Assembly: GCF_000315625.1 (NCBI RefSeq)
Contig: NW_005434522.1
Coordinates: 59,081-123,080, forward strand
Source: Guillardia theta CCMP2712
Lineage: Eukaryota > Protista > Cryptophyta
Length of the DNA: 64,000 nt
Direction: 5' to 3'
Shown here: positions 39,701 through 40,346 of the stretch, piece by piece
Layout: each line of letters begins with the position of its first letter
Position numbering within the stretch: position 1 is the first letter of the stretch
Notes under the pieces: generated by a model
What the model saw: only the letters and a program-made list of their open reading frames with translations
What the model was told of the DNA's origin: nothing
The model's database searches: none
Position numbers and translations under genes: made by a program

Positions 39701-40346
39701 CCGGGTGCCATGCGCATGCCTCCTTGCGGTTGTCCGACCTCCCGCTCTTGTCCTCTCTACCCCTCAGGGTTTCGAGCACTTCAGCCCCGCGCAGAGAGAT
39801 CCTCACCTTCTTGTTCTCTCTATCAACCTTGAGAATCTGATACTCCAGCTCTTCCCCCCACAGCAGCTTCTCGCCGTTTCTTCCCTTGTGCGCGTAGTAG
39901 GTGTGAATGAACTGCAAGACACCATGCTCGCGCACGTAGCTGAGCCAAGGCAGCGAGTCCTCCCACATCAAGGGAGTCCCCTGAACAAGCAGTCCTCCCC
40001 CCCTCAACCGTTCCATTCTTCCTCGCGCAGACCAAAGCTTGCTTGAGAGGGAGGAGCTTCGCTCGCCCCCCCTGGACCGAAGGGAGGAAGAACGAGAAGC
40101 TTTCAGCGCCTGACGAGATGCCGAGGAAGAGCCAAGATAACCCTCCATGGAGCTCGAGAGCGAGCAGCAACGATCGGAGCGACAAACTTGGTCAGCCTCC
40201 AACAAGAGCGACTCGTGGCTGAGACGGTCAGGCAGGGCAGGGAGAGAGACTGGAAGCTCAGGAGAGCAGAGAGAGGGGGAGGGGGACAGAGCAGCGTGGG
40301 CCCTCACTACAAGCATGACGAGCGGCAACAAATGCCAGCCCGCCAT
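36750..40346 (-). CDS. GCLC: Glutamate-cysteine ligase catalytic subunit (animal/fungal type) with signal peptide and RLRGG-terminated leader; 3' end approximate
   Basis: GLLVQGTPLMW, LLWGEELEY, WHPEYGAWMIEGTP, HPRFATLTGNIRKRRGSKV, MDCMAFGMGMCCLQVTFQ, PKSRYESIS, HIAHLFVRDPLV, HFENIQSTNWQTVRWKPPP and GWRVEFRSMEVQLTDFENAA. Confidence 0.95.
38078..38237. repeat. (ATC)n microsatellite in a GCLC intron
   Basis: Seen directly. Confidence 0.95.

Follow-up and report, generated by a model that had tools for sequence, protein, structure and literature searches.

What purpose does the tail of ubiquitin serve in front of an enzyme of glutathione synthesis? In the 64-kb stretch of Guillardia theta CCMP2712 DNA analysed here (the window), the sequence of a glutamate–cysteine ligase is preceded by a long leader that ends in Leu-Arg-Gly-Gly. 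A sequence-only reading of this DNA had described a signal-like start, a Ser/Arg-rich spacer containing an LRSRGG motif, and RLRGG set directly against GLLVQGTPLMW, omitting the strand; translation of the minus strand confirmed every one of these elements. The reading that we favour, with a probability of about 0.6, is that the gene specifies a second, compartment-directed glutamate–cysteine ligase catalytic subunit (GCLC) with a periplastid-type leader that is cut after Gly-Gly.

The leader and the enzyme belong to one nuclear gene on the minus strand, where window positions 40346-39993 (reverse complement) encode precursor residues M1-G118 (Table 1). A transcript contig of 2664 nt (L001, JGI sample 3300017164) aligns to the window by blastn in eight blocks, and the absence of all seven introns from it indicates that it originated from mRNA. 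Across exon 1, which includes the entire leader, transcript and window are 100% identical. The contig carries a single open reading frame of 872 amino acids, running from MAGWHLL to the stop codon with the leader in frame. On the evidence of this one spliced contig, the transcript begins at window position 40351, which lies 5 nt ahead of the ATG (40346) and not downstream of it. The leader's first ATG stands in an ACCATGG context, and all ATGs from there to Met111 are in frame, with none out of frame. The public model of the same gene (XP_005821189.1 / EKX34209.1, GUITHDRAFT_90550, 762 aa) starts at Met111 (MERLRGG) and lacks the leader, and the JGI gene call likewise starts at Met111; the 872-aa form was not found in the protein collection searched. 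The public model is thus truncated, and the leader-bearing 872-aa frame corrects it.

Table 1 Features of the leader-bearing GCLC gene, in window coordinates
Feature	Position	Strand	Basis or remark
Start codon and signal-peptide-like residues 1-18, MAGWHLLPLVMLVVRAHA	40293..40346	-	ACCATGG context; predicted cut after AHA, +1 = Ala; h-region heuristic, -3/-1 rule
Transit-peptide-like spacer, residues 19-113	40008..40292	-	Holds LRSRGG and M111
LRSRGG, residues 89-94	40082-40065	-	Inside spacer
M111, start of public model	40016-40014	-	Inside spacer
LRGG, residues 114-117, identical to the last four residues of ubiquitin	39996..40007	-	Proposed processing site, cut after G117
Remainder of exon 1, mature GCLC from G118 (GLLVQGTPLMW)	38269..39995	-	Pfam, transcript alignment, 3IG5 alignment
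Intron 1, with TCA/ATG microsatellite	38061..38268	-	Transcript versus window alignment
Exons 2-8 and their introns	36463..38060	-	blastn, transcript L001 on window
Exons 2-8 individually	38060-38005, 37942-37858, ~37476-37388, 37266-37191, 36845-36775, 36737-36641, 36577-36463	-	Edges +/- ~2 nt
Stop codon	~36501-36499	-	blastn, transcript L001 on window

Several features of the surrounding DNA deserve mention. A naive genomic reading frame of 1028 aa misleads at both ends, its poly-Met stretch being the microsatellite of intron 1 and its LEALDV-like upstream part lying outside the transcript. The TCA/ATG microsatellite occupies positions 38063-38237, would encode poly-Met if read through, and is spliced out of the transcript. 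Upstream of the gene, an 18-nt tandem repeat of about 19 copies (40552-40875) is open in the gene's frame with an LEALDV-like translation and is not covered by L001, which starts at 40351; a Pfam LED_rpt match to this repeat was rejected, as it fell below the cut-off and outside the transcript. In exon 4 (37388-37476) transcript and genome are 96.6% identical, and the public model differs from the transcript frame at three residues (DLLIAC/DVFG versus DLLTAC/DLLG). Directly beyond the 3′ end of the gene, the stretch from about 35400 to 36200 shows zero GC and zero AT and is presumably an assembly gap of N.

The Pfam family GCS (PF03074) matches the protein with E=2e-133 (445.6 bits, where the cut-off is 25), and yeast GCL (3IG5) residues 2-540 align to precursor residues 118-640 with E=3e-101. 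Judged by these matches, the gene product is the catalytic subunit GCLC. The yeast alignment opens exactly at Gly118, corresponding to chain residue 2, and the LRGG tail (Leu114 to Gly117) directly precedes it. LRGG therefore ends where a normal GCLC begins, as the sequence-only reading had stated, and a cut after Gly-Gly would yield the canonical GLL N-terminus. The leader that this cut would remove is 117 residues long and contains nine acidic residues, whereas the other LRGG leaders that we saw measure about 30-60 residues. A hydrophobicity heuristic together with the -3/-1 rule classed its start as signal-peptide-like, with LLPLVMLVV as the h-region and A-H-A as the c-region. Residues 19-117 (99 aa) comprise 27 Ser, 16 Leu, 12 Arg, 2 Lys, 3 Asp and 6 Glu, giving a net charge of +5. 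The presequence that had been read from the DNA is real, transcribed in frame and bipartite in character, with a signal-like and a transit-like part. Across the whole open frame no ubiquitin-family Pfam match, and hence no ubiquitin β-grasp domain upstream of LRGG, was found; the leader is of low complexity. Because it lacks the ubiquitin fold, the GCLC precursor is not a ubiquitin fusion.

To what extent is the LRGG border conserved? A word-index protein search returned six further distinct cryptophyte relatives with 67-76% identity, one of which (P0005) is from Hemiselmis andersenii by its cluster name. In 7/7 distinct cryptophyte orthologues, namely the window protein, P0002-P0006 and P0150, xLRGG stands directly before GLLV(K/Q/V)GTPL. 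In three of them (P0002, P0003 and P0005) the initial Met is followed by a hydrophobic stretch that resembles a signal peptide; the sequences of P0004 and P0006 are incomplete at the 5′ end. The leaders are otherwise unalignable: besides LRGG and a frequently preceding Arg or Leu-Arg, there is no conserved column. A search seeded with a Prymnesium parvum protein extended the pattern to haptophytes, where a leader ending in LRGG is followed by A-(G/E/D)-E in six sequences, including those of Prymnesium parvum and Scyphosphaera; another member of this clade (P0058) has a signal peptide only, without LRGG. In a FastTree phylogeny the LRGG sequences of cryptophytes make up one fully supported clade, and all six from haptophytes fall into a second fully supported clade together with one 5′-truncated sequence (P0123). 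Both clades belong to one supported set that also holds oomycetes, on a tree whose deep branches are unreliable. Given that the motif is invariant in seven cryptophyte and six haptophyte orthologues, and that the six-frame translation of the full 64-kb window contains only seven LRGG, its position at the GCLC border is, as judged from these sequences, not due to chance. Its conservation while the remainder of the leader drifts makes it very likely that LRGG marks a functional junction.

A comparison with other eukaryotes points to the fate of the leader. Most eukaryotic GCLCs in the two match lists start with M-GLL. Four ochrophyte sequences have a signal peptide which, when the -3/-1 rule is applied by eye, would be cut immediately ahead of GLL (GEC|GLL, GEA|GLL, GDS|GLL and VDA|GLL). 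In another clade, six sequences (P0129, P0137, P0142, P0143, P0157 and P0159) carry an Arg-rich presequence of the mitochondrial-processing type that ends in RxF|GLL. Diatom-like GCLCs (P0062, P0076, P0078, P0081, P0093, P0101 and P0108) have a signal peptide followed by AF|TLxM-GLL, with a plastid-type Phe at +1. The plastid-type and mitochondrial-type presequences imply that GCLC has been retargeted several times. Presequences of three unrelated kinds thus stop at one and the same residue, which suggests, by comparison, that GCLC needs a GLL N-terminus and that the cryptophyte leader would be removed at LRGG|GLL.

G. theta also possesses a second GCLC gene (G000:C64:305312-307474; L003), 42% identical, whose frame opens with MGLLTVGQPLSW; no earlier start codon separates it from the in-frame stop upstream. 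Its product begins MGLLTVG, has no leader, and falls far from the leader-bearing clade on the FastTree tree, in which a single exon represents it with no exons joined; it is presumably the cytosolic enzyme. This bears on the earlier suggestion that Met111 could also give rise to a cytosolic isoform. Met is kept at that position in 0/6 other distinct cryptophyte orthologues (P0004 alone has a Met, at -6), and with the MGLL paralogue already supplying the canonical form such an isoform is not needed; the suggestion is unsupported. For the subsequent step of the pathway, a single locus for a eukaryote-type glutathione synthetase was found (G000:C11:19778-21930; L008, L009). It consists of many short exons, among which the N-terminus was not placed, and no LRGG leader is visible at it.

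Does this kind of leader occur elsewhere in the genome? Degenerate DNA patterns matched the G. theta genome 353 times for LRLRGG and 193 times for the control GGRLRL, but backward-read controls gave 255 and 441 matches, so that raw counts are not decisive. Classification of the codons by eye was more informative: among the first 100 matches listed, 73 truly encode LRLRGG, compared to at most 32 of 100 for the GGRLRL control. We then took the first 20 true sites of each pattern in contig order. An in-frame Met with a hydrophobic, uncharged stretch lies 29-109 codons upstream of 14/20 LRLRGG sites, as against 0/20 GGRLRL controls. These counts show a genome-wide link between signal-like starts and LRLRGG. 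One of the 14 is a gene for eEF1A (MKCVAVLFLMGLATT...; G000:C3:1063300-1066000; L050), whose first exon encodes a signal peptide, a spacer, and LRLRGG directly before GKEK(HH). GKEK is residue 2 onward of canonical eEF1A, so LRGG abuts residue 2 just as it does in GCLC. We predict that this protein is a periplastid translation elongation factor. For seven of the first exons that follow sampled LRLRGG leaders, Pfam identified no more than a methyltransferase and a RETICULATA-like protein, and these have little bearing on the compartment. PsbO was dropped as a stromal/lumenal negative control, as its leader, in upstream exons, was not placed.

The destination of the leader-bearing enzyme can be narrowed down from these observations. 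According to Moog et al. (2011, PMC3101018), proteins of the periplastid compartment (PPC) carry a transit-like sequence behind their signal peptide, and the residue that opens this sequence is neither aromatic nor Leu. The GCLC leader displays a putative ER signal peptide by the heuristic, a Ser-rich net-positive stretch, and Ala19 as the +1 residue if the cut falls after AHA18. The occurrence of the same leader type on eEF1A points in the same direction, since this factor is useful only where there are 80S ribosomes, as there are in the PPC. The Ala at +1 and the eEF1A leader together make the PPC the likely destination of the leader-bearing GCLC.

On this basis a route can be proposed. The ER signal peptide (residues 1-18) would direct co-translational entry into the ER around the complex plastid, and its removal would expose Ala19 as a non-aromatic +1 residue. 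The precursor would then cross the periplastid membrane via the ERAD-derived SELMA machinery into the PPC, where an endopeptidase would cut after Gly116-Gly117 and release GCLC from Gly118, the N-terminus that other eukaryotes obtain by removing Met1. We consider both the cut after Gly-Gly and the periplastid location likely, and LRGG|GLL is probably an undescribed cut site. As to the protease, we infer that a ubiquitin-tail-specific enzyme would be the most economical choice, and it is plausible that a protease of the deubiquitinase type cuts the leader. Among 30 USP, 6 C12 and 20 C48 loci, each scanned with 1.5-kb flanks, a signal-like Met followed by a leader and LRGG occurs in exactly one; within the 1.5-kb flanks of the C12 and C48 loci no start combining signal and LRGG was found. 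The one is a USP14/Ubp6-like locus (G000:C13:4682-9475; L077) with a signal-like start, a 52-residue leader and LRGG. With its exons searched separately, the protein matches a USP14-type ubiquitin-like domain (1WGG, E=2e-5), and its catalytic exon is USP14-like (5GJQ, E=4e-16). We predict it to be a periplastid deubiquitinase, and it is no more than a candidate for cutting the leader. A wider proposal is that cryptophytes and haptophytes share a ubiquitin-tail code, in which SELMA imports are matured after LRGG by a ubiquitin-specific protease of the PPC, a deubiquitinase serves as transit peptidase, and the first step of glutathione synthesis takes place in the relict cytoplasm of the endosymbiont; we put this forward tentatively and think it rather doubtful as a whole.

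Could the public model nevertheless be right, with translation from Met111 and an upstream frame that is a 5′ UTR open by chance? The two existing gene calls agree on this start, and its ATG also has A at -3 and G at +4. However, the transcript offers an earlier in-frame ATG in ACCATGG with no out-of-frame ATG in between, and the orthologues have signal-like leaders, none of them with Met at the position of Met111. Moreover, LRGG would be turned into a conserved N-terminal extension without explanation, in a genome in which a canonical paralogue is already present. We regard a start at Met111 as extremely improbable.

If the leader is real, LRGG might still be a recognition or sorting element rather than a scissile site, read for instance by a factor for PPC import or retention, with the leader being kept or cut elsewhere. 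Conservation alone does not separate binding from cleavage, and the ubiquitin fold that deubiquitinases usually need is absent upstream of LRGG. Against a role limited to recognition stands the finding that the motif abuts canonical residue 2 in both GCLC and eEF1A, and that the cuts predicted in other lineages fall at the identical GCLC residue; we judge such a role to be unlikely. We assign a similarly low likelihood to a third explanation, namely that the protein resides in the plastid stroma or in the lumen of the ER or secretory pathway, and that LRGG is cut by a stromal or secretory-pathway protease. Plant GCL is plastidic, diatom orthologues have the plastid-type Phe after their signal peptide, and in ochrophyte orthologues GLL is preceded by nothing but a signal peptide. 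Against this stand the Ala at +1, a PPC-type mark (PMC3101018), and the presence of the same leader type on eEF1A and on the USP14-like deubiquitinase, cytosol-type proteins without a role in the stroma or the ER lumen. A periplastid GCLC whose leader is cut after Gly-Gly thus remains our preferred reading.

How would such a maturation compare with known systems? Ubiquitin-fusion precursors (Ub-L40, Ub-S27a and polyubiquitin) are cut by deubiquitinases after ...LRGG. They resemble the GCLC precursor in having LRGG directly before the released protein, with a variable residue after Gly-Gly, but they contain a β-grasp domain where GCLC has a low-complexity spacer behind a signal peptide. Although cellular deubiquitinases normally need the ubiquitin fold, the papain-like protease PLpro of coronaviruses cuts LXGG in polyproteins, which shows that a tail motif like that of ubiquitin can suffice as a cut site for an enzyme of the deubiquitinase fold even in a linear context without ubiquitin; PLpro is, however, viral and cytosolic, and its context is unrelated to that of the GCLC leader. 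Canonical GCLC, such as yeast Gcl (3IG5), belongs to the same family, PF03074, as the window protein but has an MGLL start and no leader. As plant GSH1 shows, glutathione synthesis can have its first step in a plastid-related compartment, although this enzyme is of a different GCL family and has a simple transit peptide. A further parallel is provided by PPC bipartite leaders (Moog et al. 2011, PMC3101018), which share with the GCLC leader a signal peptide, a hydroxylated net-positive stretch and a +1 residue that is neither aromatic nor Leu. The GCLC leader, in contrast, closes with an LRGG that is invariant; the literature searched describes neither a conserved motif at the C-terminal end of PPC leaders nor a cut site in them. 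Nor did that literature, subscription papers excepted, yield an LRGG, RLRGG, LRLRGG or diglycine motif tied to periplastid or nucleomorph leaders.

The present analysis contributes a corrected gene model, a canonical paralogue, the argument from three presequences, the extension to haptophytes, an unbiased upstream-context test of LRLRGG sites and the leader-bearing USP14-like enzyme. GCLC offers an unusually clean test case: eukaryotes share one mature N-terminus for this enzyme, at which three kinds of presequence come to an end. The result suggests that in cryptophytes and haptophytes γ-glutamylcysteine synthesis takes place within the complex plastid. A periplastid GCLC in these algae would be new, given that a periplastid-directed glutathione system was not found in Phaeodactylum (Moog et al. 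2011, PMC3101018). If LRGG is invariant at the border between leader and mature protein, periplastid proteomes could be predicted from a mark in the sequence, and mutagenesis would have a defined target. Maturation at this site would bear on how periplastid proteins lose their leaders and on how they can be told from stromal proteins beyond the +1 residue, and cleavage there would link maturation mechanistically to the ubiquitin machinery that is already known to drive import.
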